The notes below the pieces were generated by a model. That model searched no databases, was not told where the DNA came from, and worked only from the letters and a program-made list of their open reading frames with translations. A stretch of DNA of 64,000 bases from Lepidodermella squamata (lineage: Eukaryota > Animalia > Gastrotricha), in assembly GCA_047495785.1 (NCBI GenBank), contig JBLDXI010000046.1:1757301-1821300 (forward strand). Direction: 5' to 3'. The first letter of the stretch is position 1. Each line of letters starts with the position of its first letter. Positions 38,130 through 63,845 of this stretch are shown here, piece by piece. The translations under genes were made by a program, and so were the position numbers.

Positions 38130-39340
38130 GTATGTCAAAATAATTCATAGTTTCTCGGACCTTCCAATACATTTGGATTAAGCGCATTGCGATTGTATTG
38201 TCGGGTCCGCTGATAGCGTAAATATAGTTGAAAACCATGTGCGATGAACGGAAAGGTTCCAGGTCGGTTCCAAATGACCTAGTTTGATTTTGATGTTTTG
38301 TAATGAAGCATTTCGAAATTTTCTTAAATTCTCGGATCTTCATGGGATTTTTGACTGTTGGAATGAAAATAGTACAATCGGGTCAACCTAGCATGATTAT
38401 GTGGTCAAAACTTTGGCAGAGTGAACAAAAAAGATTCCAGATCAATTCCAAGCGACCTACTTCGGACTTCAGATTTTCACTTCTGGCATCTCAAAATACA
38501 AAATACTACATTATTCCTCGGATTTTCAAGCGCTGGTCGATTAATCGAACGGAAAAGATCCGCTAATGACGATTATGTGTTTGAAAACCATGCACGGTGA
38601 AGAGAAAAGGATCCAGATCGATCCAAAATGACCTACTTTGAGTTTGAAATTTTCACGGTTGATCTTTCAAATGTCATGTCAATGTCAAACGCCAATATGT
38701 GAGTAATTTACAAGAATCGTGCTATCAGGCCTGCTGATAACGATTACGTGGTTGGAAACCATGTATGGTGAAGGGAAAAGTTTCCAGATCGATGAGAAAC
38801 GGCCTATTTTGATTCGATCTGGTCACGGCTGACCGTTCAAATTTCACCTCAACTTGTCGTATTCTGATCCGATTGGTGAAAAATTTACAGTCAGCTGATG
38901 ACGAATATCAAGTCGGATCAAGACGGCTGTCGACAATAAAGATTCCGGAGCGAACTAAATTCATCTATTTCGAAATTGAGATTTTCATTTTTGGCATTTC
39001 AAAATAATTCATAATTTCTCGGATCTTCAGTCAAATGTCGATTAATTGCATGGAAATAGTATTATCGGGTCCGTTGATGACGGAAACGCGGTCGAAAACC
39101 ATGTGCGGTGAAGGGAAAAGGTTCCAGATCGGTTCCAGATGACCTACTTTGAAATTTAAAATGTCACTTATGGAGGTTCAAATTCTTCAACAATTCCGGT
39201 GATAATGAGTTAACTTTTGATAAATCGCAAAGAATATGTAAAACAGGGTCCGCTGATCACGGAAATCATGTCCAAAACGGGGTACGTCTAATATTAAGGG
39301 TTCCAGAATTTTTACGTGACCTGTTGGATCATATTTAAAA
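38130..39340. repeat. Diverged tandem satellite, ~7 units of ~170-177 bp
   Basis: Motif AAAACCATGTGCGGTGAAGGGAAAAGGTTCCAGATCG..CCAAATGACCTACTTTG recurs near 38231, 38407, 38585, 38757, ~38925 (degenerate), 39095 and ~39273. Confidence 0.85.
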
Positions 39341-42526: not shown

Positions 42527-43255
42527 GGGGTTAGGGTTAGTATGGTTAGTGCTACGGTCCTTCGGTTCAATGTATTGTAAATTTTCAAGCAAAACTTTCC
42601 ACCCCGTGACCAAATTGTCACGGAGGTTCGTGCTGGTCATTGAGGCGCAGGCTTGACGCCACGCGTTGACGAATTCTTCGCGCGGTTCGCCGAGGTTGAT
42701 GCCGCGGGCCTTGCGGATGACCGAAACGGAGCTGCCTTGACCGCAGACGCTGTTGAAGGCGCGAGCGGTGTAGAGCGGTAGCGAGTCGGGGTCGCAGTAG
42801 CGGAACGCTTGCGACGCGTCCTTGTAGGCGAAGTACGCGGCACCTGCGTGAACCCAGCCGGAGCGGAGACGAAGCGAGGTGACGGTGGCGGCGGCGAAAA
42901 TGTCCCGTTCTTCAACGACTTTCGGGTCGTCGAGCGAGTCTGTAGGAAAGAATTTGTGCATGCCATTAATAAAATTTCTCTCATGTGGCGTGTAGCCGCC
43001 GCTGTTCACGGCCGTGCTAATGCGCGCACGAATAATAAAATGATTAATGAATGATGCAAGCTTGGCCTGATATCGCTCGAGGATATCGTGACGGTGCTGC
43101 TGATCGAGGCGTTGACGACGATCGATGGGCGGTGGTGGCGGAGGCGGCGGTGGCGCGTTTTTCGGAGCACGATTGCTCGACGCGTAGCGGTCTTCGCGGT
43201 AGCGGTAGCGGTCTTCGCGGTCTTGATGACGGTCTTCACGGTACTGGCAACAGTC
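42527..43255 (-). mobile_element. Fragment of a second, divergent family of the telomere-associated Penelope-like element (ORF1 N-terminal domain only)
   Basis: The frame is open across the fragment and aligns by eye to ORF1 at 56152-58647: QHRHDILERYQAKLASFINHFIIRARISTA vs EHRQDLLDRFREKLNNFIHHFFILAKLATA; T.HE..KFFP; DA.QA..YC.P; R.FN.V; V.RK; GW; DRS...NPN. Confidence 0.85.
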
Positions 43256-43293
43256 GGGGTGGGTTAGGGTTAGGGTTAGGGTTAGGGTTAGGG
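43256..43293 (+). repeat. Interstitial telomeric tract (TTAGGG)5 capping the fragment
   Basis: ggggtgggttagggttagggttagggttagggttaggg directly abuts the 5'-truncated end of the ORF1 fragment. Confidence 0.92.
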
Positions 43294-52358: not shown

Positions 52359-52580
52359 TACGTGAATCGCTCAAAATCGGATACTGAAATAACATGAATA
52401 ATAACCAATGTTAATTACCAACATGTTACGTGCCTTCAGCTTCATTTGCGAGATTTTATCAGCTCTGACCAAGTGATGTGCAATAAGACCATATGTCAGG
52501 TAGCGATATTTTTTGGTGTGCCAACTGCACCTCTTAAAAATAAGGTTCCAGCACTAAATTTGAAAGTCACTCGCACTAAT

Positions 52581-52731
52581 GGGGTTAGGGTTAGGGTTAG
52601 GGTTATTGGTAATAGTTTAATGGGGTTAGGGTTAGGGTTAGGGTTTGGGGTTAGGGTTGGGGTTAGGGTTAGGGTTAGGGTTAGGGTTAGGGTTAGGGTT
52701 AGGGTTAGGGTTAGGGTTAGGGTTAGGGTTA
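52581..52731 (+). repeat. Telomeric (TTAGGG)n tract, proximal anchor of the retroelement array
   Basis: Two TTAGGG runs with TTGGGG/TTTGGGG variants, separated by a short spacer (~52605-52621). Confidence 0.95.
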
Positions 52732-53702
52732 ATTAGTAAGCTGCGGTCCGCCTGTATTTTGTTTTGCGCAAGGTGATAAGTAAAAGCCTGCCAGCCCTTC
52801 GTAACGTTGGTGAGCAAGTCAGGGCTGCGCATGGCGCGTTTCATTTCGTTGCAGGCGCATTGAAATTGTTCGTAGATCGCCGGCCAGTAGATGTTGCTCG
52901 ACTTGCGCAGGACTCGTAGCACGCTGTTGCTGCTCGCGACAGTGTTGAAGACCCGCGACGTTTGGGCCGCTCTGTCCGACGGATGGCAGTAGTTTGCTGC
53001 TTGGCGTGCATCGGTGAACGCACTTTCGAGAGCTTGCTCGTGTCCTGTCATGGATTTATGACGTATCTCGGAAACAACATTGTAAAAAAGCAAATCAACG
53101 ATGCCCTGAGTGCTAGCTTCGAACCGATGCTCGCGCGGGAAGAACTTCTCGAGCACTGGCCGGAGTGCCTTCTCGTGAGCGGTGGTGGGTCTCTCGTTTT
53201 GAGGTTTGGCGTAGTCTTCACTGAAGTTGGCTGTGGCGAGCTTGGCTAAAATGAAGAAATGATGAATAAAATTGTTGAGTTTCTCGCGGAAGCGATCGAG
53301 GAGATCTTGTCGATGTTCCCTCGCTCGACGTTGCCCTTCTGCTGCTGCCTTAGAAGGTAGCTGCCCGTTGTCCGTTGAGTCTTGCGGTCGCTTCGTACCA
53401 TCCGCGTGCCGACGGTCTGACTGAGCGTTCGAACCAGACCCGTGCGAGCGACTGGAGCGGCCGTGCGTAGCACCCTCGTGCGAACGGTAAGATCGAGTGT
53501 TCGAACTGGACGCTGCTGCGGAGACTGTCTGTTTCGAGCGGCTTTGATGACGATCGCGCCGTTCTTGTTGATAGGGCGGATTGTGACGACTCGAGTTGTA
53601 ATAGACGTAGCGGAAGCGGCCAAAGATGGCCCGTCCCGGGCGGTCGTTGTTAATTTCTGTAAACCCGTTGTTATTAGAAACAAAACGGTTACGGTTAGAC
53701 AT
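52638..53702 (-). CDS. ORF1 truncated at the telomere junction, reading into telomeric repeats as poly(Asn-Pro), 354 aa
   Basis: Identical to the ORF1 N-terminus up to ...DRSLLINPN, then (NP)n from CCCTAA repeats. Confidence 0.7.
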   Translation of the reverse strand: MSNRNRFVSNNNGFTEINNDRPGRAIFGRFRYVYYNSSRHNPPYQQERRDRHQSRSKQTVSAAASSSNTRSYRSHEGATHGRSSRSHGSGSNAQSDRRHADGTKRPQDSTDNGQLPSKAAAEGQRRAREHRQDLLDRFREKLNNFIHHFFILAKLATANFSEDYAKPQNERPTTAHEKALRPVLEKFFPREHRFEASTQGIVDLLFYNVVSEIRHKSMTGHEQALESAFTDARQAANYCHPSDRAAQTSRVFNTVASSNSVLRVLRKSSNIYWPAIYEQFQCACNEMKRAMRSPDLLTNVTKGWQAFTYHLAQNKIQADRSLLINPNPNPNPNPNPNPNPNPNPNPNPNPNPKP

Positions 53703-53711
53703 AATGAGATT

Positions 53712-53750
53712 TATTGGTAGACCGGTTTCACTATTTCTTCAGTACCAATA
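53712..53750 (-). ncRNA. Minimal type I hammerhead ribozyme, copy 1
   Basis: Minus strand TATTGGTA-CTGAAGA-AATAGT-GAAA-CCGG-TC^TACCAATA: 8-bp helix I, intact core CUGANGA/GAAA/GUC, vestigial helix II, palindromic ACCGGU helix III. Confidence 0.9.
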
Positions 53751-54479
53751 TCATACTTCTGATAGAATTATAACGAGTGACATTATTGTGACAGCGCTAT
53801 GATAACACCGTACCAGGTGCGTGTGCCTCGGACTATGTTAGGCGCAGCGGATTAGGATTACAAGGTGTTGTTTCGCGCACACGTGTTACTAAGTTCAAGT
53901 TAACTACGGCAGGTGTGCGTCTAGGTGTGCGCACTATATCGGATTAGCGCACAGATGTTGTGGCCACTACTTGTTGATCGGTGATTCTAGCCAAATGGGT
54001 AACAAGGTGTGCTACTAGGCTGGCGAGGCCTTGATGACGAGCTAACGTGACATCTGTGCTGTTGAGAGACGACAATTACAATGATGAAGATGACCAATAG
54101 AAGATTGACAGCTGACGCAAGGCGTTATTGCCGGCGACATCAAGGTATTGAAAGCAATAAAAGTCATAAAACAGGATATGCCGATTCTAAGGTCGTTATC
54201 GACTTTGGATCTCGCTGCGGGTTACTGGTTGATACCAGGATGGCTTGGCCGCCGTGGTCGTGCGCGACTATGACTCGCTGACGTCCAGAACATTAGACCT
54301 CGCTGCGGGTTACTGGCCGATACCGCGTTGAACAGGCTATAAAACATGAATGGAGAAACATATAATACTGCGTAATGGTGGTAATTAATCTAATGAATTA
54401 ATTAAGAATAATTAATAAACGGTCGGTAGCTTTGTTGCTACTCTTGACATCGTCGCTGGCTACTGGTCGATTGGTTCGG

Positions 54480-56306
54480 CTAGCAGTCTTTCGTTCGGCA
54501 GAGTTGCTTGACAACGCTTGGACCGAGTCGGGTGACGAGACGAATGCGTCGCCGGCGTGCGATGTCGTACAGTGGCTGTAGTGGCCGAACGAACTTCGTT
54601 TCGACCGGTGGTCGCCAGTCTTGTTGGTAGCGAAAGTTGTCGACACGATTGCGTAGGAACGGCCAGTCTTGACCTTCGCAACTTGTGATGACGTCGTGGG
54701 CGAGCGCAAAAACATCTGCGTCGACGTAGCCGTACTTGGACGCGGAACTGGCGAGGCTAAAAATGGCAGAACACAAGTCTTCTGTATTATTGCAAATTCT
54801 TAAAAAGTTTAAAATGCGCCCTGTGACTGCGGCCCGGAGAGTCGATTCTGGGTGATTGGAGTCAGCGTGTAAGAGAGGCAACGAGTTCATGGGCTTGAAG
54901 TAAACGCCGGTTCTGATGGAGCCATCGGGGTACTTGCTCAGGCGGACGTCGAGAACATTCGCACGCTCGGAGCTGATCTCGACTTCGAGCTTTATACGTG
55001 GATGTAGTGCGCCGTATTCGTTGCCTAGCGTGACTGCGGCCTCTTGAGTGGTGCAGATTGCGAAGACGTCGTCTCGATACCGTTTGAACAACATCACGTC
55101 GGTTTGGCGTTCGACCAGATCGCGCTCGAGCACATAGAGGAACGCGTCCGCTACGACTGGGGCACTGTTGGAGCCCATCGGAATTCCGTGCACCTGACGA
55201 TACTGAATGCCTGAAAAATAGAAAATGTTTGAATTAAGTGTTATTTCGAGCATTGCGACGACGAGGTCGCGTTCGGGTGCGGTTCCGATTGCGTTCTCGT
55301 CCAACATGGTCTTGATCGCTGCGATTCCTTCTCCAATCGGTACGTTGGTGTACAAGTCGCTCACGTCTGCGGTAAAGAACGTGACGTCGCACCCGCTTGA
55401 GTCGATTGCGCGAACAGCGTGTAGTAGGTCGATGGTAGACGAGGCACAGGTAGTCATGAACCGGTTAAGCGGTTTGCAGTAAGCTGCGGCGACCTTGTCT
55501 GCGGCGGCGAGCGCTGTGCCCAAACAGTCGACAATCGGCCGAATTTTCGGTAGACCATCTACGTCAAATGCCTTGTGCATTTTTGGTAAAAAATAAATAT
55601 GACGATCGCGGGTTGGCTCGAGATCGAGCCCGCGTAACAGCTTGCGTTGTGCGGCTGTACCGGTTGCCATAACGCGGTCGACGAGAGTCTTCATTGCTTC
55701 GAGGCCTCGCTTCTCTTCTGATTCTTCGGCGTGCACATAGTTCGCTGTAGTGAGATGTTTGAGCGCCATTTTCGAGTAGTTCGCCTTTGACATGTAGACC
55801 ATCGCTGCACCTTTGTCAGATTTCTTGAATACGCCGTCTTTGCGGAGGGCGCGTAATCGTCGTAGCTGTGGGTCGTCGACGATGGGACCGAGCCGTACTG
55901 TGCGAGCTGGCTGTGCGTGGCGGATAACGACTTGTCCGTGGATCCCGATAATCGGACCAACGAAGCGCTTTGAGAACGCTACAGAGGGAACCTTGACGTC
56001 GAGGCCGTGGTCGGGACGAGGGACGACGGTTGCGCCAAGGAGATCTGAAATGACATTAACACAGGCAATTTTATCTTTTTTCGTGAAATTAATGATTTTA
56101 AGGCCACGCTCGAGTGCCTGTTTCTCGGCTGGCTGGAGAGTTCCCGTCAGGTCAACGACGGACGGTAGAGAACAGCGATGCAGCGTCCCGTACGCTCCGT
56201 TTTGGACTAGGGATGGGATGGCCCTGAGCCCGAGCGATCCCGCGAAACCGCGACGCGATGTCTGCGTGTCTGTCTCCTTTTTCGTGCTTCTCGCGGATGT
56301 GTGTGA
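54480..56306 (-). CDS. Penelope-type reverse transcriptase, copy 1 (stop-to-stop frame; first ATG at 55802)
   Basis: VVDLTGTLQPAEKQALERGL (PLE N-terminal motif), KKSDKG, YFLPKMHK, RPIV, ADVSDLYTNVP, QVHGIPMGSNSAP, YRDD, thumb YFKP...SNHP. Confidence 0.95.
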   Translation of the reverse strand, partial: SHTSARSTKKETDTQTSRRGFAGSLGLRAIPSLVQNGAYGTLHRCSLPSVVDLTGTLQPAEKQALERGLKIINFTKKDKIACVNVISDLLGATVVPRPDHGLDVKVPSVAFSKRFVGPIIGIHGQVVIRHAQPARTVRLGPIVDDPQLRRLRALRKDGVFKKSDKGAAMVYMSKANYSKMALKHLTTANYVHAEESEEKRGLEAMKTLVDRVMATGTAAQRKLLRGLDLEPTRDRHIYFLPKMHKAFDVDGLPKIRPIVDCLGTALAAADKVAAAYCKPLNRFMTTCASSTIDLLHAVRAIDSSGCDVTFFTADVSDLYTNVPIGEGIAAIKTMLDENAIGTAPERDLVVAMLEITLNSNIFYFSGIQYRQVHGIPMGSNSAPVVADAFLYVLERDLVERQTDVMLFKRYRDDVFAICTTQEAAVTLGNEYGALHPRIKLEVEISSERANVLDVRLSKYPDGSIRTGVYFKPMNSLPLLHADSNHPESTLRAAVTGRILNFLRICNNTEDLCSAIFSLASSASKYGYVDADVFALAHDVITSCEGQDWPFLRNRVDNFRYQQDWRPPVETKFVRPLQPLYDIARRRRIRLVTRLGPSVVKQLCRTKDC

Positions 56307-58647
56307 TCAGACCATTGATTGAGCAGCTCTTGCCGACGTGGCCGCATCGTTTGCCGCTCGGTAGCTTGAAAGCGCACGACCACTTGCCGTTGTGAAACTC
56401 GACGAGTATCGACGGATCGCGTATCTTTTCTTTCTTCCACCATTCGCGGGTGAACTCTGCTTTGCTCAAGTTCTTCTGTATGGCGTAGTCTTGCTTTGAT
56501 AGCGTGGTCGTCGTATCACCCTGCTCTTGACGGACCGACTGAGCGTTCGAACCGTGCATCGGTGGGTTGTGCGCAGGCGGTCGCGATGCCGGTGCCAGGC
56601 GTTTGAGACACGTTCCGGGTTGCCCGTACATTTGTTGCGCCGAGATCGCTTTGACGACGGCGGGCTTCTTGGACGGCGCCGGAAGTTCTGTTGGTGACTT
56701 GTCTTTCGGGCTGGTGGCACGAGCTCGCTTGGTGGGCACCGAGGCGTTTGGCGCACCTGGTCGAGGAGCGTTCTGCGAGACCGCGTTGATCGCTTCACCG
56801 AAGAACGAGGCGACCGAGCTGACATCTGAAATAGAATTGCAATTATTAAAACGAGATTCGACATTGGCTGCAGCTGCTGCTAGCGCGGTGTCGCTGGCAC
56901 TGTCGATCGGTGAAGCGTCCTTGCTCGGAGTCTGAGGCAGAGGCGCGGACGTGGGCGTTAACTGGGCTGCTGTCGATTTGTCGGCAGTGACCGTTTGTGG
57001 AGTAGCCGGGCGGGCTACATTGATAGTCGTTGAGTGGTCGGCGGTCGCCGCTGAATCGCGGCTGCCACCGTTCTTGGTAACCAAGTTGCTAGCTTCAGAA
57101 GTTGACCGAGCGGTAGTCGACGCTGAACCGCGACTGTCAACGCTCTTTGAGACCAAGTTGCTAGCTTCAGAAGTTGACCGAGCGGTAGTCGACGCTGAAC
57201 CGCGACTGTCATCGCTCTTTGAGACCGAGTTGCTAGCTTCAGAAGTTGACCGAGCGGTAGTCGACGCTGAACCGCGACTGTCATCGCTCTTTGAGACCAA
57301 GTTGCTAGCTTCAGAAGTTGACCGTGCGGGAATCGAGGCCAAATCGCGACCGAGACCTCTCTTCGGTACCAGTGCGTTGATCTGAGCGGTTGAACGTGCG
57401 GAAATCCAGGTCGAATCGCGTTCTTCTGTGGTGAGCAAGCCCCAATCACCCGGGCTCGGATGGCCAGTCTGAGCGGTTGAACCGGGAGCCGCCTTGGGTG
57501 TCGGTGGTAACGCTTGACGAGCTGTTTCTGATTGACCTGTCGGCGTAACCGGATTGACGGCCGGGTCGCTTACGACCATCGGCGACGAAGACTGAATGGT
57601 GTCGTGCGCTTCAACTGTTATGTTGACAGGTGCTTCCCTTGGGGAGGCATGGACCTGAGAAAGAGAGTTAGGGTTAATTAGTAAGCTGCGGTCCGCCTGT
57701 ATTTTGTTTTGCGCAAGGTGATAAGTAAAAGCCTGCCAGCCCTTCGTAACGTTGGTGAGCAAGTCAGGGCTGCGCATGGCGCGTTTCATTTCGTTGCAGG
57801 CGCATTGAAATTGTTCGTAGATCGCCGGCCAGTAGATGTTGCTCGACTTGCGCAGGACTCGTAGCACGCTGTTGCTGCTCGCGACAGTGTTGAAGACCCG
57901 CGACGTTTGGGCCGCTCTGTCCGACGGATGGCAGTAGTTTGCTGCTTGGCGTGCATCGGTGAACGCACTTTCGAGAGCTTGCTCGTGTCCTGTCATGGAT
58001 TTATGACGTATCTCGGAAACAACATTGTAAAAAAGCAAATCAACGATGCCCTGAGTGCTAGCTTCGAACCGATGCTCGCGCGGGAAGAACTTCTCGAGCA
58101 CTGGCCGGAGTGCCTTCTCGTGAGCGGTGGTGGGTCTCTCGTTTTGAGGTTTGGCGTAGTCTTCACTGAAGTTGGCTGTGGCGAGCTTGGCTAAAATGAA
58201 GAAATGATGAATAAAATTGTTGAGTTTCTCGCGGAAGCGATCGAGGAGATCTTGTCGATGTTCCCTCGCTCGACGTTGCCCTTCTGCTGCTGCCTTAGAA
58301 GGTAGCTGCCCGTTGTCCGTTGAGTCTTGCGGTCGCTTCGTACCATCCGCGTGCCGACGGTCTGACTGAGCGTTCGAACCAGACCCGTGCGAGCGACTGG
58401 AGCGGCCGTGCGTAGCACCCTCGTGCGAACGGTAAGATCGAGTGTTCGAACTGGACGCTGCTGCGGAGACTGTCTGTTTCGAGCGGCTTTGATGACGATC
58501 GCGCCGTTCTTGTTGATAGGGCGGATTGTGACGACTCGAGTTGTAATAGACGTAGCGGAAGCGGCCAAAGATGGCCCGTCCCGGGCGGTCGTTGTTAATT
58601 TCTGTAAACCCGTTGTTATTAGAAACAAAACGGTTACGGTTAGACAT
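56152..58647 (-). CDS. Full-length ORF1 of the Penelope-like element, 831 aa (basic N-terminus, conserved helical domain, S/T/A-rich linker, C-terminal C2H2/BED-like zinc finger)
   Basis: Intact ORF directly upstream of and overlapping the RT frame; WSCAFKLPSGKRCGHVGKSCSINGLITHIREKH; homologue at 42527-43255. Confidence 0.85.
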   Translation of the reverse strand: MSNRNRFVSNNNGFTEINNDRPGRAIFGRFRYVYYNSSRHNPPYQQERRDRHQSRSKQTVSAAASSSNTRSYRSHEGATHGRSSRSHGSGSNAQSDRRHADGTKRPQDSTDNGQLPSKAAAEGQRRAREHRQDLLDRFREKLNNFIHHFFILAKLATANFSEDYAKPQNERPTTAHEKALRPVLEKFFPREHRFEASTQGIVDLLFYNVVSEIRHKSMTGHEQALESAFTDARQAANYCHPSDRAAQTSRVFNTVASSNSVLRVLRKSSNIYWPAIYEQFQCACNEMKRAMRSPDLLTNVTKGWQAFTYHLAQNKIQADRSLLINPNSLSQVHASPREAPVNITVEAHDTIQSSSPMVVSDPAVNPVTPTGQSETARQALPPTPKAAPGSTAQTGHPSPGDWGLLTTEERDSTWISARSTAQINALVPKRGLGRDLASIPARSTSEASNLVSKSDDSRGSASTTARSTSEASNSVSKSDDSRGSASTTARSTSEASNLVSKSVDSRGSASTTARSTSEASNLVTKNGGSRDSAATADHSTTINVARPATPQTVTADKSTAAQLTPTSAPLPQTPSKDASPIDSASDTALAAAAANVESRFNNCNSISDVSSVASFFGEAINAVSQNAPRPGAPNASVPTKRARATSPKDKSPTELPAPSKKPAVVKAISAQQMYGQPGTCLKRLAPASRPPAHNPPMHGSNAQSVRQEQGDTTTTLSKQDYAIQKNLSKAEFTREWWKKEKIRDPSILVEFHNGKWSCAFKLPSGKRCGHVGKSCSINGLITHIREKHEKGDRHADIASRFRGIARAQGHPIPSPKRSVRDAASLFSTVRR
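57080..57325 (-). repeat. 72-bp (24-aa) in-frame tandem repeat in ORF1, ~3.4 copies; same repeat at 62025-62270
   Basis: ARSTSEASNLVSKSDDSRGSASTT repeated; CAAGTTGCTAGC at 57082 and 57154 gives the 72-bp spacing. Confidence 0.92.
57667..57676 (-). other. Internal telomere-complementary site (RNA 5'-UAACCCUAAC-3') within ORF1; putative primer-annealing site
   Basis: GTTAGGGTTA at 57667-57676 corresponds exactly (offset 4945) to the telomere/element junction at 52722-52731. Confidence 0.85.
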
Positions 58648-58656
58648 AATGAGATT

Positions 58657-58695
58657 TATTGGTAGACCGGTTTCACTATTTCTTCAGTACCAATA
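58657..58695 (-). ncRNA. Minimal type I hammerhead ribozyme, copy 2
   Basis: Identical to 53712-53750; predicted cleavage between 58665 and 58664, 17 nt upstream of the ORF1 ATG (58647). Confidence 0.9.
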
Positions 58696-59424
58696 TCATA
58701 CTTCTGATAGAATTATAACGAGTGACATTATTGTGACAGCGCTATGATAACACCGTACCAGGTGCGTGTGCCTCGGACTATGTTAGGCGCAGCGGATTAG
58801 GATTACAAGGTGTTGTTTCGCGCACACGTGTTACTAAGTTCAAGTTAACTACGGCAGGTGTGCGTCTAGGTGTGCGCACTATATCGGATTAGCGCACAGA
58901 TGTTGTGGCCACTACTTGTTGATCGGTGATTCTAGCCAAATGGGTAACAAGGTGTGCTACTAGGCTGGCGAGGCCTTGATGACGAGCTAACGTGACATCT
59001 GTGCTGTTGAGAGACGACAATTACAATGATGAAGATGACCAATAGAAGATTGACAGCTGACGCAAGGCGTTATTGCCGGCGACATCAAGGTATTGAAAGC
59101 AATAAAAGTCATAAAACAGGATATGCCGATTCTAAGGTCGTTATCGACTTTGGATCTCGCTGCGGGTTACTGGTTGATACCAGGATGGCTTGGCCGCCGT
59201 GGTCGTGCGCGACTATGACTCGCTGACGTCCAGAACATTAGACCTCGCTGCGGGTTACTGGCCGATACCGCGTTGAACAGGCTATAAAACATGAATGGAG
59301 AAACATATAATACTGCGTAATGGTGGTAATTAATCTAATGAATTAATTAAGAATAATTAATAAACGGTCGGTAGCTTTGTTGCTACTCTTGACATCGTCG
59401 CTGGCTACTGGTCGATTGGTTCGG

Positions 59425-61251
59425 CTAGCAGTCTTTCGTTCGGCAGAGTTGCTTGACAACGCTTGGACCGAGTCGGGTGACGAGACGAATGCGTCGCCGG
59501 CGTGCGATGTCGTACAGTGGCTGTAGTGGCCGAACGAACTTCGTTTCGACCGGTGGTCGCCAGTCTTGTTGGTAGCGAAAGTTGTCGACACGATTGCGTA
59601 GGAACGGCCAGTCTTGACCTTCGCAACTTGTGATGACGTCGTGGGCGAGCGCAAAAACATCTGCGTCGACGTAGCCGTACTTGGACGCGGAACTGGCGAG
59701 GCTAAAAATGGCAGAACACAAGTCTTCTGTATTATTGCAAATTCTTAAAAAGTTTAAAATGCGCCCTGTGACTGCGGCCCGGAGAGTCGATTCTGGGTGA
59801 TTGGAGTCAGCGTGTAAGAGAGGCAACGAGTTCATGGGCTTGAAGTAAACGCCGGTTCTGATGGAGCCATCGGGGTACTTGCTCAGGCGGACGTCGAGAA
59901 CATTCGCACGCTCGGAGCTGATCTCGACTTCGAGCTTTATACGTGGATGTAGTGCGCCGTATTCGTTGCCTAGCGTGACTGCGGCCTCTTGAGTGGTGCA
60001 GATTGCGAAGACGTCGTCTCGATACCGTTTGAACAACATCACGTCGGTTTGGCGTTCGACCAGATCGCGCTCGAGCACATAGAGGAACGCGTCCGCTACG
60101 ACTGGGGCACTGTTGGAGCCCATCGGAATTCCGTGCACCTGACGATACTGAATGCCTGAAAAATAGAAAATGTTTGAATTAAGTGTTATTTCGAGCATTG
60201 CGACGACGAGGTCGCGTTCGGGTGCGGTTCCGATTGCGTTCTCGTCCAACATGGTCTTGATCGCTGCGATTCCTTCTCCAATCGGTACGTTGGTGTACAA
60301 GTCGCTCACGTCTGCGGTAAAGAACGTGACGTCGCACCCGCTTGAGTCGATTGCGCGAACAGCGTGTAGTAGGTCGATGGTAGACGAGGCACAGGTAGTC
60401 ATGAACCGGTTAAGCGGTTTGCAGTAAGCTGCGGCGACCTTGTCTGCGGCGGCGAGCGCTGTGCCCAAACAGTCGACAATCGGCCGAATTTTCGGTAGAC
60501 CATCTACGTCAAATGCCTTGTGCATTTTTGGTAAAAAATAAATATGACGATCGCGGGTTGGCTCGAGATCGAGCCCGCGTAACAGCTTGCGTTGTGCGGC
60601 TGTACCGGTTGCCATAACGCGGTCGACGAGAGTCTTCATTGCTTCGAGGCCTCGCTTCTCTTCTGATTCTTCGGCGTGCACATAGTTCGCTGTAGTGAGA
60701 TGTTTGAGCGCCATTTTCGAGTAGTTCGCCTTTGACATGTAGACCATCGCTGCACCTTTGTCAGATTTCTTGAATACGCCGTCTTTGCGGAGGGCGCGTA
60801 ATCGTCGTAGCTGTGGGTCGTCGACGATGGGACCGAGCCGTACTGTGCGAGCTGGCTGTGCGTGGCGGATAACGACTTGTCCGTGGATCCCGATAATCGG
60901 ACCAACGAAGCGCTTTGAGAACGCTACAGAGGGAACCTTGACGTCGAGGCCGTGGTCGGGACGAGGGACGACGGTTGCGCCAAGGAGATCTGAAATGACA
61001 TTAACACAGGCAATTTTATCTTTTTTCGTGAAATTAATGATTTTAAGGCCACGCTCGAGTGCCTGTTTCTCGGCTGGCTGGAGAGTTCCCGTCAGGTCAA
61101 CGACGGACGGTAGAGAACAGCGATGCAGCGTCCCGTACGCTCCGTTTTGGACTAGGGATGGGATGGCCCTGAGCCCGAGCGATCCCGCGAAACCGCGACG
61201 CGATGTCTGCGTGTCTGTCTCCTTTTTCGTGCTTCTCGCGGATGTGTGTGA
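59425..61251 (-). CDS. Penelope-type reverse transcriptase, copy 2 (first ATG at 60747)
   Basis: Translation identical to copy 1. Confidence 0.95.
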   Translation of the reverse strand, partial: SHTSARSTKKETDTQTSRRGFAGSLGLRAIPSLVQNGAYGTLHRCSLPSVVDLTGTLQPAEKQALERGLKIINFTKKDKIACVNVISDLLGATVVPRPDHGLDVKVPSVAFSKRFVGPIIGIHGQVVIRHAQPARTVRLGPIVDDPQLRRLRALRKDGVFKKSDKGAAMVYMSKANYSKMALKHLTTANYVHAEESEEKRGLEAMKTLVDRVMATGTAAQRKLLRGLDLEPTRDRHIYFLPKMHKAFDVDGLPKIRPIVDCLGTALAAADKVAAAYCKPLNRFMTTCASSTIDLLHAVRAIDSSGCDVTFFTADVSDLYTNVPIGEGIAAIKTMLDENAIGTAPERDLVVAMLEITLNSNIFYFSGIQYRQVHGIPMGSNSAPVVADAFLYVLERDLVERQTDVMLFKRYRDDVFAICTTQEAAVTLGNEYGALHPRIKLEVEISSERANVLDVRLSKYPDGSIRTGVYFKPMNSLPLLHADSNHPESTLRAAVTGRILNFLRICNNTEDLCSAIFSLASSASKYGYVDADVFALAHDVITSCEGQDWPFLRNRVDNFRYQQDWRPPVETKFVRPLQPLYDIARRRRIRLVTRLGPSVVKQLCRTKDC

Positions 61252-62522
61252 TCAGACCATTGATTGAGCAGCTCTTGCCGACGTGGCCGCATCGTTTGCC
61301 GCTCGGTAGCTTGAAAGCGCACGACCACTTGCCGTTGTGAAACTCGACGAGTATCGACGGATCGCGTATCTTTTCTTTCTTCCACCATTCGCGGGTGAAC
61401 TCTGCTTTGCTCAAGTTCTTCTGTATGGCGTAGTCTTGCTTTGATAGCGTGGTCGTCGTATCACCCTGCTCTTGACGGACCGACTGAGCGTTCGAACCGT
61501 GCATCGGTGGGTTGTGCGCAGGCGGTCGCGATGCCGGTGCCAGGCGTTTGAGACACGTTCCGGGTTGCCCGTACATTTGTTGCGCCGAGATCGCTTTGAC
61601 GACGGCGGGCTTCTTGGACGGCGCCGGAAGTTCTGTTGGTGACTTGTCTTTCGGGCTGGTGGCACGAGCTCGCTTGGTGGGCACCGAGGCGTTTGGCGCA
61701 CCTGGTCGAGGAGCGTTCTGCGAGACCGCGTTGATCGCTTCACCGAAGAACGAGGCGACCGAGCTGACATCTGAAATAGAATTGCAATTATTAAAACGAG
61801 ATTCGACATTGGCTGCAGCTGCTGCTAGCGCGGTGTCGCTGGCACTGTCGATCGGTGAAGCGTCCTTGCTCGGAGTCTGAGGCAGAGGCGCGGACGTGGG
61901 CGTTAACTGGGCTGCTGTCGATTTGTCGGCAGTGACCGTTTGTGGAGTAGCCGGGCGGGCTACATTGATAGTCGTTGAGTGGTCGGCGGTCGCCGCTGAA
62001 TCGCGGCTGCCACCGTTCTTGGTAACCAAGTTGCTAGCTTCAGAAGTTGACCGAGCGGTAGTCGACGCTGAACCGCGACTGTCAACGCTCTTTGAGACCA
62101 AGTTGCTAGCTTCAGAAGTTGACCGAGCGGTAGTCGACGCTGAACCGCGACTGTCATCGCTCTTTGAGACCGAGTTGCTAGCTTCAGAAGTTGACCGAGC
62201 GGTAGTCGACGCTGAACCGCGACTGTCATCGCTCTTTGAGACCAAGTTGCTAGCTTCAGAAGTTGACCGTGCGGGAATCGAGGCCAAATCGCGACCGAGA
62301 CCTCTCTTCGGTACCAGTGCGTTGATCTGAGCGGTTGAACGTGCGGAAATCCAGGTCGAATCGCGTTCTTCTGTGGTGAGCAAGCCCCAATCACCCGGGC
62401 TCGGATGGCCAGTCTGAGCGGTTGAACCGGGAGCCGCCTTGGGTGTCGGTGGTAACGCTTGACGAGCTGTTTCTGATTGACCTGTCGGCGTAACCGGATT
62501 GACGGCCGGGTCGCTTACGACC
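61097..62522 (-). pseudogene. 5'-truncated ORF1 of the distal copy
   Basis: Matches 56152-57577, then switches abruptly to GGGTTAGGG at 62523. Confidence 0.88.
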
Positions 62523-62561
62523 GGGTTAGGGTTAGGGTTAGGGTTAGGGTTAGGGTTGGGG

Positions 62562-62602
<41 letters not shown>

Positions 62603-62700
62603 GGTTAGGGTTAGGGTTAGGGTTAGGGTTAGGGTTAGGGTTAGGGTTAGGGTTAGGGTTAGGGTTAGGGTTAGGGTTAGGGTTAGGGTTAGGGTTAGGG

Positions 62701-62741
<41 letters not shown>

Positions 62742-62810
62742 GGTTAGGGTTAGGGTTAGGGTTAGGGTTAGGGTTAGGGTTAGGGTTAGGGTTAGGGTTG
62801 GGTTAGGTTA
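62523..62810 (+). repeat. Telomeric (TTAGGG)n tract, ~290 bp, capping the 5'-truncated end of the array
   Basis: Continuous TTAGGG with occasional TTAGGGG/TTTAGGG/TTGGGG variants; non-telomeric DNA resumes at ~62811. Confidence 0.96.
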
Positions 62811-63791
62811 ATTACCAGACGGGAAGCCTAAGCAACCCCGGCATAAAAGCTCTAGCGATCCCTTTCACTCTAGCAACGGTGAGAGGAGAGTAAACCACTT
62901 TTTAATCTGTGGATTAGCAGCAGAGTAAGGTGATGGGCTAAACCGATTTCAATGATCAATTGAAATAAAGGTTGAACGTAAGTCGTGCGTGGAACCATAA
63001 CTTAAAGTTCCATCCAGACAAAAGCCTTAATTGAACCCGAACCATAAGATTGAGGTTAACCGATTGACTCCACATTTGGATTAGTAGTGAGCTATGTCAG
63101 TACCGCATCTAGGGTTTGTTGGTATCGTAGTCCCGGGAACAACCATTAGTGTGGTCATTAGACTCACTACACTCATGAACGATCAATTGACTGTGCGTGC
63201 ACAGGCAATGACGACGGATTGGAATCATTCTATGATCCACTGATGCTTAGACTTTCCCACAACAGACAGTAAAAAGTTGATATAAGTTTGTTGTAACTAG
63301 GGTAGAGATTATCAAACTGTCATCTATCGTTTGTATGTAGAGAGTTCGAGGATGAAATATCTTATCCAGCGACAGGAGTAAGAAACCTCGATTCAAAGGA
63401 ACACGATGGACAACAACATATCGGATGTCTCGGACTACTAAACGAGATGATCTCAATAGAGACCAATAGACAATGACGCATGTTGTGTATTTAGAAACCA
63501 TGGCCAGAGAACAGTGAACTTTAACAGTTAACACTAAAGCTGCAAATACACTGAGTAGTGAACCTTAACTCTTAGCCTGTAGCCTGCGGCTAATTAACTT
63601 TAAAGCATGTCAACTCTTGGAAATAGGCCAAGTTCAAGCAAAATATTACGAAAATTATATCAAATCTTGAAAGAATTTCGCGCCAGAACCCACATGGCAC
63701 TAACATTTAAAGAACGTAAGATAACGCGGTTTGTAAGGCCGTGCTTTGGAGAAATTCTGTCATTCGAGTGGATTTTGTTTTGAGCAACTAA

Positions 63792-63845
63792 AGTCACTGA
63801 TGAGCCTGCTGCCCACAGGCGAAACCGGTCTGACTATTCTGGGCG
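63792..63845 (+). ncRNA. Type I hammerhead ribozyme of a different family, with a possible loop II pseudoknot
   Basis: AGTCA-CTGATGA-GCCTG-CTGCCCA-CAGGC-GAAA-CCGG-TC^TGACT; helix I 5 bp, helix II 5 bp, palindromic helix III; loop TGCCCA complementary to downstream TGGGCG (63840-63845). Confidence 0.9.

Follow-up and report, generated by a model that had tools for sequence, protein, structure and literature searches.

The role of the hammerhead ribozymes carried by Penelope-like retroelements (PLEs) has been debated since 2014, and reviews still call it unknown (PMC7761336). The locus described here raises the question of what such a ribozyme does for its element when it has been cut down to the catalytic core and one helix and stands just before the first gene.

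Two identical hammerhead motifs in the window

The window, a stretch of 64 kb, contains exactly two identical copies of a 39-nt minimal type-I hammerhead motif, both on the minus strand, with copy 1 at 58695-58657 and copy 2 at 53750-53712. The initial annotation had reported an intact core, an 8-bp helix I, almost no helix II and an ACCGGU palindrome at these sites; all of these parts are present, and the two-copy motif is confirmed as real. Its sequence is UAUUGGUA-CUGAAGA-AAUAGU-GAAA-CCGG-UC/UACCAAUA, where the slash marks the predicted cut. Besides the 8-bp helix I, it comprises the core CUGANGA...GAAA, A15.1/U16.1, the GUC triplet and the ACCGGU palindrome, and at the position of helix II it has instead the 6-nt linker AAUAGU, which offers at most one A-U pair. 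Cuts are predicted after C58665 in copy 1 and after C53720 in copy 2, giving new 5' ends at 58664 and 53719. With the ORF1 AUG at 58647 and 53702, respectively, cleavage would leave a leader of 17 nt, the same distance that the annotation had claimed. No exact match to the 39-nt motif is expected from 100 shuffles, whereas the window has two.

The host retroelement

The motifs belong to an endonuclease-less PLE, which is present as 1.98 units, flanked by TTAGGG repeats and stacked on the chromosome end. Positions 52719-57577 and 57664-62522 are 99.98% identical, with a period of 4,945 bp, and the earlier claim of one hammerhead per unit holds for this tandem with its two copies. All features of the element are read from the minus strand. 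ORF1 (831 aa, 56152-58647) reads through a telomere-matching stub, AACCCUAAC, at 57667-57675, about 990 nt beyond the cut. In the second copy the N-terminal part of ORF1 (52731-53702) ends at the same stub motif, which there forms the 3' end of the element and its junction with the telomeric tract near 52730. The reverse transcriptase (RT) frame (54480-56306, 608 codons from stop to stop, first AUG at 55802) overlaps the end of ORF1 in a different frame, and about 730 nt of non-coding sequence (53751-54479), containing the 3' UTR and a putative promoter, separate the RT stop from hammerhead copy 2.

The 3' end of the element faces the centromere side and is joined via the reverse-complement stub to telomeric repeats, namely the (CCCTAA)n tract at 52575-52730 that primed it. 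The 5' truncation is capped by another (CCCTAA)n tract at 62523-62810, the plus strand of which reads TTAGGG; two of the relatives introduced below, L006 and L009, likewise terminate in CCCTAA repeats. The stub lies within the coding part of ORF1, with the result that the genomic copy and the hammerhead-bounded RNA are related by circular permutation. A truncated piece of a sister family, at about 42527-43293, is also capped by telomeric repeats; its 5' end lies inside ORF1, away from any hammerhead site.

The sole domain matched in the RT frame was RVT_1 (5.5e-6, just under the Pfam cut-off). No GIY-YIG endonuclease was found in this 608-aa frame, and the 730 nt downstream of it have no open frame for an endonuclease domain. 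Homologues of the RT carry DUF8422/HTH_animal, with GIY-YIG in addition in a distant relative (P0018), and clusters of RT look-alikes in the Atlas show the same PLE-type Pfam set, the nearest of them being mostly rotiferan. ORF1 matched no Pfam domain, and a word search with it gave no homologues. Its kinship was seen in an alignment of the ORFs downstream of the relatives' hammerheads, where the N-terminus MS..NRF..FTEIN.DR is conserved.

Conservation and covariation of the motif

We compared the window element with ten related loci, the RTs of which are 36-62% identical to its own. Each of the ten carries one motif of the same build, in the same place and on the sense strand. Throughout the window and the relatives the catalytic core (C3-U4-G5-A6-N7-G8-A9 and G12-A13-A14) is invariant, N7 being A, U or G; A15.1-U16.1 is A-U in 10/10 aligned rows, and H17 is C or U, never G. 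Helix I varies from 6 to 13 bp across the clade and its sequences are unrelated, yet they remain paired: pairing occurs in about 98.3-98.9% of cells, compared to 61.5% in shuffled (0/500) and 23-46% in slid controls, with compensatory changes at all six scored pairs. The helix III palindromes of the clade are ACCGGU, ACUAGU and AUCUAGAU, and the palindrome is preserved via double substitutions (CCGG to CUAG).

In the window and all ten relatives a mostly non-pairing linker of 4-6 nt replaces helix II. A helix II segment is present in L011, L012 and 29 outgroup motifs; in the outgroup it measures 12-21 nt and forms a stem of 3-7 bp in 28 of the 29. Since the more distant PLEs retain a real helix II, the form that lacks it is a derived variant.

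The location of the motif is also conserved. It lies 4-129 nt before a conserved ORF1 AUG in all 11 elements, corresponding to a post-cleavage leader of 11-138 nt, and CCCTAA follows about 760-1050 nt downstream in nine of the ten relatives and at about 1.6 kb in L009, ORF1 coding sequence occupying the interval. Four contigs, each from an independent assembly, can be closed into circles, an appearance that tandem DNA would share. When rotated to the cut site, the circle-closing contigs of L003 and L005 have the order leader-ORF1-RT-UTR-hammerhead, with one hammerhead per unit. The partnership between ribozymes and retroelements is known; what is new is a conserved, stripped-down form without helix II that precedes the first gene.

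Signals flanking the motif

A TATA-like box, TATAAT, is found 30 nt upstream of core C3, at 53767-53772 for copy 2 and, as inferred from this position and the 4,945-bp period, at 58712-58717 for copy 1 (both on the minus strand). An AAUAAA hexamer, on the same strand, starts 5 nt after the cut, at 58655-58660 for copy 1 and 53710-53715 for copy 2, the latter being the only sense-strand AATAAA in the whole 4,945-bp unit. The hexamer overlaps the 3' strand of helix I in the window element and in L004, L005 and L006. Both signals are enriched around the motif: TATAWW occurs 25-50 nt upstream of C3 in five of nine elements (0.78 expected, P=0.0004), and in six of ten an AATAAA begins no more than 15 nt past the cut (0.18 expected, P<0.0002). 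We rejected AT-richness as the source of these enrichments, for both survive local-shuffle controls. Adjacency to a TATA box was also rejected as a clade-specific trait; it is likewise seen in 9 of 18 outgroup PLE hammerheads. The arrangement is new: the hammerhead is part of a TATA-hammerhead-AAUAAA-AUG module that precedes the telomere-matching priming stub inside ORF1 by about 1 kb.

Comparison with known systems

Minimal hammerheads in PLE pseudo-LTRs were reportedly also described by Lunse and colleagues in 2017, and endonuclease-less telomeric PLEs (Athena/Terminon, Coprina) are said to have been described by Gladyshev and Arkhipova in 2007 and by Arkhipova and colleagues in 2017. With the former group (Cervera & de la Pena 2014, PMC4209133) the window motif shares type-I topology, an intact core, a palindrome in place of an independent helix III, one sense-strand copy per tandem unit and a promoter-like TATA just upstream. 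The consensus of that group, which our outgroup loci match, has a helix II of 6-8 bp with a bulged 5' base and a helix I of 4-5 bp, whereas the window clade has the short linker instead of helix II and a long helix I.

With the Athena/Terminon PLEs of bdelloid rotifers and Coprina, as summarised in published accounts (PMC6431247, PMC8557442), the window element shares the absence of GIY-YIG, a telomeric-stub 3' junction, telomere-capped 5' truncations, an ORF1 upstream of the RT and the presence of a hammerhead; this is a likeness of features, the RT tree being one of this study's relatives only. In the Athena/Terminon elements the stub comes directly after a 3'-terminal hammerhead, for which a role in exposing it has been proposed (PMC6431247). 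In contrast, the stub of the window clade is of the CCCUAA type (not ACACCC), and about 0.8-1.0 kb separate it from the hammerhead, placing it downstream within ORF1. With the ribozyme thus uncoupled from the telomere-priming stub, the role of exposing a 3' stub cannot apply in this clade.

Hammerheads in the 5' UTRs of chrysoviruses and fusariviruses (Lopez-Galiano et al. 2026, PMC13725137) have a helix II of 0-2 bp, no loop-loop contacts and a position a few nucleotides before an ORF, all as in the window. They differ in having a long helix III, acting as monomers and residing in RNA genomes, whereas in the DNA-encoded motif of the retroelement helix III is a palindrome only, pointing to a dimer, and cleavage is a prediction. 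These natural hammerheads without helix II are cleaved in vivo, yet in vitro they reach only about 1e-3 per min (PMC13725137). Synthetic minizymes, which have the same core, a 4-5-nt non-pairing linker between A9 and G12 and long substrate-binding arms, are still active without helix II (PMC544870); they are engineered and trans-acting, whereas the window motif is a natural, conserved sequence whose self-complementarity suits it to dimerisation.

Retrozymes (plant LTR and animal non-LTR; PMC5680766, PMC7229834, bioRxiv 10.64898/2026.07.22.740005) consist of units bounded by two hammerheads, an organisation predicted for the window transcript too, and likewise occur in tandem genomic copies; their excised unit is ligated into a circRNA, and a link to PLEs has been proposed. 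They are, however, small and non-coding, while the window unit is 4.9 kb long and autonomous (ORF1 and RT), and its circle is hypothetical. Finally, the Poseidon element PAc of Anolis (Frangieh et al. 2024, PMC11167929) has a hammerhead at the start of its ORF, and its RT initiates internally on the RNA template. There, the hammerhead contains the ORF start and is cleaved 26 nt downstream of the AUG, in contrast to a predicted cut 17 nt upstream of it in the window; PAc also has stem II and an endonuclease.

Proposed mechanism

We consider it probable that we are dealing with an authentic minimal type-I hammerhead, kept by selection and active only as a domain-swapped dimer, which is predicted to trim transcripts to hammerhead-to-hammerhead units. 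Having neither a helix II nor a helix III of its own, it could reach the active fold only in such a dimer. RNAcofold favours the helix III-paired dimer by 3.3-11.5 kcal/mol, and in the minimum free energy structure helix III is intermolecular and helix I is swapped. The view taken in the initial annotation, that of a PLE-type minimal hammerhead built for a dimer, is supported by this modelled preference as well as by the invariant core of the 11 elements, the covariation in helix I, the retained palindrome and the constant place of the motif before ORF1. A maxizyme-like intermolecular helix II was rejected, the linkers not being self-complementary except for AAUU.

Against the observed background of motif, conservation, covariation, position and flanking signals, we infer dimer-dependent cleavage in vivo and the ends of the transcript as follows. 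The 6-nt palindromes of two copies would form a shared helix III, and the long arms of helix I would clamp the substrate strands. TATA box, hammerhead, AAUAAA and ORF1 AUG form a compact LTR-like module, and a module-to-module transcript would have one hammerhead copy at each end. Once paired, the copies would remove the capped 5' stub and the 3' tail at the same time, leaving a unit-length RNA (58664 to 53720) that carries complete ORF1 and RT and has a 5'-OH at one end and a 2',3'-cyclic phosphate at the other.

That two motifs bound a unit-length RNA had been suggested in the initial annotation. It fits the anatomy of the locus and follows an earlier proposal of dimer action and a circRNA model for PLE minimal hammerheads (Cervera & de la Pena 2014, PMC4209133). 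The present analysis refines it: the two hammerheads are 4,945 nt apart, and with a TATA-like box upstream and AAUAAA downstream of each, one terminally redundant transcript, itself a prediction, could carry both copies, so a single hammerhead-to-hammerhead interval suffices. The companion suggestion, that a monomer or circle with one motif would be comparatively stable, is better stated as dependent on concentration, since the dimer may also form in trans. Two further consequences follow from the anatomy. The inserted DNA has two intact internal hammerheads, and the template that was reverse-transcribed was therefore either uncleaved or religated. Also, the TATA-like box of the window is just 30 nt from C3, and transcripts from the element's own promoter might consequently start inside helix I, without a complete 5' copy.

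The low in vitro activity of PLE minimal hammerheads counts against dimer cleavage. The hammerhead of the Anolis Poseidon element required protein and was dispensable for insertion in vitro, and no RNA-seq read terminated where it is cut (PMC11167929).

More speculatively, the trimmed product would be ligated into a circle, on which telomere-primed reverse transcription could proceed for more than one unit. In its full form, which we entertain only tentatively, this would make the element an autonomous, protein-coding "retrozyme": its dimer-only hammerheads would act as a completeness check, a 4.9-kb RNA would be excised and circularised, the G-overhang of the chromosome would initiate synthesis at the CCCUAA stub inside ORF1, and the RT would copy its way around the circle. 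A circular template, if real, would explain the circularly permuted copies, their length of more than one unit and the intact hammerheads, as well as the arbitrary 5' end points healed by telomerase. With neither helix II nor helix III, the motif would also rank as the most reduced of the known natural hammerheads.

Alternative explanations

The initial annotation had proposed a search with the Rfam hammerhead models. At gathering scores no family matched in the window, and no Rfam model matched the relatives at E<=10; under permissive settings, RF03152 does align the window core, at 23.8 bits compared to a gathering score of 56.3. That the gathering thresholds are not reached speaks for a fortuitous resemblance or for a side effect of coding constraint. 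However, a strict descriptor gave two matches in the window and nine in the ten relatives (ten when the 8-nt palindrome of L009 is allowed), all ten relatives having the motif on the sense strand and in the same place, whereas 0.0 matches are expected on shuffles of the window or of the ten related loci. A covariance model built from the relatives alone recovered just the two window sites (37.1 bits, E 7.6e-7), with the next match at 15.2 bits (E 0.33). Together with the compensatory covariation, these results refute chance. Coding constraint is ruled out as well: being upstream of the ORF1 AUG and containing an in-frame stop, the motif is non-coding. We therefore assign this explanation next to no probability.

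Somewhat unlikely, in our estimate, is a 5' processing and translation device, in which the cut just upstream of ORF1 would leave a short 5'-OH leader (17 nt) that drives cap-independent translation, with unit excision being secondary; it is compatible with dimer cleavage rather than exclusive of it. The fixed place of the motif, always before the conserved ORF1 AUG in the 11 elements and within the distances given above, is in line with such a role, which a review assigns to retrotransposon 5' ribozymes (PMC7761336), and it would parallel the HDV-like ribozymes that R2-type non-LTR elements carry at their 5' end as well as the chrysovirus/fusarivirus hammerheads. The latter also bear on a worry voiced in the initial annotation about translating from an uncapped leader, as they set a precedent for cap-independent translation driven by self-cleavage (PMC13725137). 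Still, reported ribozyme-only translation is below 1%, dimer dependence would be odd for a constitutive 5' processing site, and the conserved AAUAAA right after the cut is left unexplained. Moreover, a TATA-like box about 30-46 nt upstream implies that the element has its own capped 5' end, so removal of the cap needs justification. We regard as distinctly unlikely a non-catalytic RNA signal, with the hammerhead-derived fold now serving as a dimerisation (kissing-palindrome) or protein-binding site, for example in packaging, in recognition by RT or ORF1 or in masking AAUAAA within helix I. A hairpin with a 6-nt palindrome resembles the retroviral dimerisation initiation site, AAUAAA does overlap helix I in four of the elements, and very slow chemistry is to be expected once helix II is lost; the Poseidon hammerhead, which required protein for cleavage and was unneeded for insertion (PMC11167929), may be cited here too. 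But dimerisation or binding alone would not demand that every core nucleotide stay invariant while the RTs are only 36% identical, nor do they account for N7 and H17 varying exactly as hammerhead rules prescribe, with G never at H17.

Implications

A ribozyme cut down to its core and one helix, yet conserved with full covariation, is an argument that hammerheads acting very slowly or with assistance have a biological use. This helix II-less class escapes the curated Rfam models altogether, and such hammerheads may therefore be under-counted in animal genomes. As the hammerhead-bounded RNA and the inserted DNA are mutual circular permutations, linear and circular templates predict differing 5'-end distributions of insertions and differing RNA species. 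The window clade is an unusually clean test of PLE hammerhead function.

The host element

Self-comparison showed that 52719-57577 recurs as 57664-62522 with 99.98% identity and a period of 4,945 bp, that is, 1.98 head-to-tail units whose sense strand is the minus strand. Telomeric (CCCTAA)n flanks the tandem block on both sides (TTAGGG on the plus strand). The 3' end of the element, ...UAAUUAACCCUAAC, runs directly into the telomeric repeat tract, and the junction motif AACCCUAAC is found once inside each unit, at 57675-57667. ORF1 (58647-56152, minus strand, 831 codons) has no Pfam match and no homologue by word search; the RT frame (56306-54483, minus strand, 608 codons), which overlaps the end of ORF1 in another frame, matches RVT_1 only. 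No GIY-YIG endonuclease was found in the element, nor an open frame for one in the 730 nt that separate the RT stop from the hammerhead; the domain is present in the distant relative P0018. The nearest ESM-Atlas clusters to the RT, which we use as a lead only, are Penelope-like element (PLE) RTs (DUF8422/HTH_animal/RVT_1) of similar length, mostly from Rotifera. Other genes in the window (NatA auxiliary subunit, LARP1, a tyrosine kinase, a Sushi-domain protein) are of ordinary animal type. From the telomeric flanks, the PLE-type RT, the missing GIY-YIG and the animal-type genes, we identify the setting as a subtelomeric, telomere-primed, endonuclease-less PLE, apparently of the Athena/Coprina kind, in an animal whose telomeres are TTAGGG.

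Ahead of its first AUG the RT frame stays open for 168 codons, and at 56155-56306 (minus strand) it runs over the end of ORF1 in the +1 frame. The contig of one relative, L003, has the same layout (ORF1-RT overlap of ~90 nt, +1), which suggests recoding or reinitiation. ORF1 also holds a 72-bp (24-codon) imperfect tandem repeat with ~87% identical copies (57044-57420 and 61989-62365). Just past the 5' telomeric cap, at 62811-62830 (minus strand), another sequence ends ...GGUAAUUAACCCUAA into the repeats; it has the UAAUUAACCCUAA junction in common with the studied element, so that telomere-primed elements seem to be chained together here. At 42527-43293 (minus strand), a second, diverged family is represented by a truncated piece that ends in ACUAACCCUAACCCC; the 5' end of this piece, capped by five CCCTAA units, lies within ORF1-like coding sequence and not at a hammerhead cut site. 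The telomeric tract beneath the element (52575-52730, minus strand) is degenerate, with CCCCAA and CCCAAA variants and the interruption UUAAACUAUUACCAAUAA, which fits an old, internalised telomere.

Identification of the hammerhead motif

A 39-nt motif is present exactly twice in the window, on the minus strand at 53750-53712 and 58695-58657, with no chance matches expected in shuffles. It reads, 5' to 3', UAUUGGUA/CUGAAGA/AAUAGU/GAAA/CCGG/UC/UACCAAUA, comprising the two strands of the hammerhead core, a helix I of 8 bp, a GUC cleavage triplet and, from A15.1 to U16.1, the palindrome ACCGGU, with the 6-nt stretch AAUAGU in the position of helix II. The predicted cut falls after C53720 and C58665, leaving a 17-nt leader before the ORF1 AUG at 53702 and 58647. 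The motif is non-coding, being 5' of the AUG with an in-frame stop inside. Thus the initial annotation, which had placed two minimal hammerheads here, one per unit and 17 nt ahead of the AUG, with an 8-bp helix I, an intact core, a palindromic helix III and almost no helix II, holds for both copies.

For the Rfam search that it had named as a check, curated Rfam models were run on the window at gathering score and in permissive scans, and none matched the motif at gathering score; RF03152 aligned its core at 23.8 bits, its gathering score being 56.3 (E was 3.5 when 16 kb were scanned and 0.031 for a stretch of 141 nt). A second, different hammerhead, AGUCA/CUGAUGA/GCCUG...CAGGC/GAAA/CCGG/UC/UGACU, lies near the window end at 63792-63835 on the plus strand, opposite to the studied element; with its 5-bp helix II it has the classic build of PLE minimal hammerheads.

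Conservation and covariation

RT searches yielded 18 relatives, 25-62% identical and located on short contigs of Logan, JGI and ENA assemblies; twelve of these contigs were fetched for hammerhead examination. Leaving aside L011, each of the ten contigs with RTs 36-62% identical has a single motif built in the same way, which lies on the RT sense strand, 3' of the RT and 5' of the next ORF. These motifs share the core CUGA(A/U)GA, a 4-6-nt linker, GAAA, and C or U at H17; the palindrome is ACCGGU, ACUAGU or, in L009, AUCUAGAU. Helix I spans 6-13 bp and its sequence is wholly different from element to element. A strict descriptor gives 0.0 expected matches per shuffle of the relatives' loci or the window. 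In an alignment of ten hammerheads (A1), 98.9% of cells are paired, vs 61.5% when shuffled (0/500) and 23-46% with slid partners; all six helix I pairs show compensatory changes, and helix III palindromy is kept through CG to UA double changes. Variation at N7 and H17 stays within hammerhead rules. A covariance model built from nine relatives with the window left out (R1) matches only the two window sites at 37.1 bits (E ~8e-7). Its next match, at 15.2 bits (E 0.33; 38996-39036, minus strand), has a CUGAAGA...GAAA core and a poor helix I and is probably due to chance. On this comparative evidence we regard it as settled that the window motif is a real hammerhead fold.

The dimer-type architecture put forward initially is likewise favoured by modelling: in RNAcofold the dimer is more stable than two monomers by 3.3-11.5 kcal/mol for 11/11 elements. 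In the minimum free energy dimer helix III is intermolecular, and helix I of the window motif is swapped as well; each RNA would act as the enzyme strand for its partner's cleavage site, a double-hammerhead arrangement. A maxizyme-like intermolecular helix II is unsupported, since the linkers are not self-complementary.

Loss of helix II

The hammerhead of L011, whose RT is 36% identical, is a classic PLE minimal one: helices I and II have 4 bp each, helix II is accompanied by a bulged A, and the palindrome is 8 nt long. Helix II is 5 bp long in L012, an endonuclease-bearing relative. A metagenome scan with an RT alignment added 80 distant PLE loci (22-31% identity), among which we found 29 sense-strand hammerheads with palindromic helix III. 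None of the 29 has a short linker in place of helix II: the segment is 12-21 nt in every case and forms a 3-7-bp stem in 28, the remaining one being AU-rich and scored at 1 bp; helix I measures 3-8 bp. These hammerheads agree with the published PLE consensus, in which helix II is large and helix I short (PMC4209133). In the RT tree, where basal branches are long and six rows are represented by RT only, the clade whose 10/10 examined members are without helix II has L011 as its sister (91/91 support). This placement is consistent with helix II having been lost once while helix I grew longer. Synthetic minizymes whose linker measures 4-5 nt show activity (PMC544870), and natural chrysovirus hammerheads with helix II absent are slow in vitro (~1e-3 per min) but do undergo cleavage in vivo (PMC13725137). 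The loss is compatible with catalysis but predicts slow chemistry.

A conserved module around the hammerhead

The hammerhead lies 4-129 nt 5' of the ORF1 AUG in every family member, with a predicted post-cleavage leader of 11-138 nt. Since the N-terminus MS..NRF..FTEIN.DR is conserved in 7/9 elements, this AUG is the true ORF1 start. TATAWW occurs 25-50 nt 5' of core C3 in five of nine independent elements (P=0.0004; local shuffles predict 0.78); the window box is TATAAT at 53772-53767. Since TATAWW also lies 35-46 nt 5' of the core in 9/18 distinct outgroup PLE hammerheads (L013-L092), a promoter directly abutting the hammerhead looks like a general PLE trait. Transcription is predicted to start within a few nt of the 5' edge of helix I, and the window transcript may or may not include the whole helix. 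AATAAA begins 3-9 nt after the predicted cut in 7/11 elements; six of ten independent elements have it starting within 15 nt after the cut, where 0.18 would be expected (P<0.0002). The window unit has no other AATAAA anywhere on its sense strand. The hexamer is less frequent in the outgroup (3/18).

The stub, the short telomere-matching sequence where priming starts, lies ~990 nt 3' of the predicted cut in the window. CCCTAA occurs within ORF1 ~760-1050 nt 3' of the cut in 9/10 relatives and at ~1.6 kb in L009; L006 and L009 break at or in CCCTAA repeats. Four contigs from independent JGI/Logan assemblies (L002 and L003, the same element, L005 and L006) have identical ends of 30-99 nt and close as circles of 4.2-5.0 kb, which means that each comes either from a tandem array or from a circular molecule. 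When rotated so as to begin at the cut site, L003 and L005 read leader-ORF1-RT-UTR-hammerhead, with one hammerhead per unit.

Discussion

The window module is a conserved, covarying, dimer-type hammerhead fold in the order TATA-hammerhead-AAUAAA-AUG, one per unit. Hammerhead identity and dimer architecture are supported by comparative and modelling evidence. A transcript running from one module to the next would carry a hammerhead copy at each end; we think it somewhat probable that the two copies pair through the palindrome and are both cut, removing the capped 5' stub and the 3' tail and freeing a 58664-to-53720 RNA with complete ORF1 and RT. The main rival, compatible with unit release, is that cleavage would drive cap-independent translation of ORF1, for which HDV-like ribozymes of non-LTR elements and viral 5'-UTR hammerheads are precedents. 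A non-catalytic role in dimerisation or binding is less likely, because every catalytic nucleotide is invariant. Poor cleavage of PLE minimal hammerheads in vitro counsels caution on a cleavage role, and the Anolis Poseidon hammerhead needs protein, is dispensable for insertion in vitro and shows no RNA-seq ends at the cut site (PMC11167929).

With reverse transcription beginning at the internal stub, copying of a cleaved linear unit could give only a ~1-kb dead end. Both hammerheads in the 9.8-kb window insertion are intact, and the insertion is the hammerhead-bounded RNA circularly permuted, so its template was either a multi-unit transcript left uncleaved or a circle, formed by religation and copied for nearly two turns. 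A circle model for PLEs was proposed in 2014 by Cervera & de la Pena (PMC4209133); for the window element we consider a religated circle doubtful.

According to later papers that summarise their anatomy, Athena/Terminons have the stub immediately 3' of a terminal hammerhead at the 3' end, which is proposed to expose it (PMC6431247, PMC8557442), whereas the stub of the window element is ~990 nt downstream, inside ORF1. What is new is a hammerhead that lacks helix II, has only a palindrome for helix III and is conserved in a whole clade of telomere-primed PLEs, and its placement there before ORF1, not beside the priming stub.
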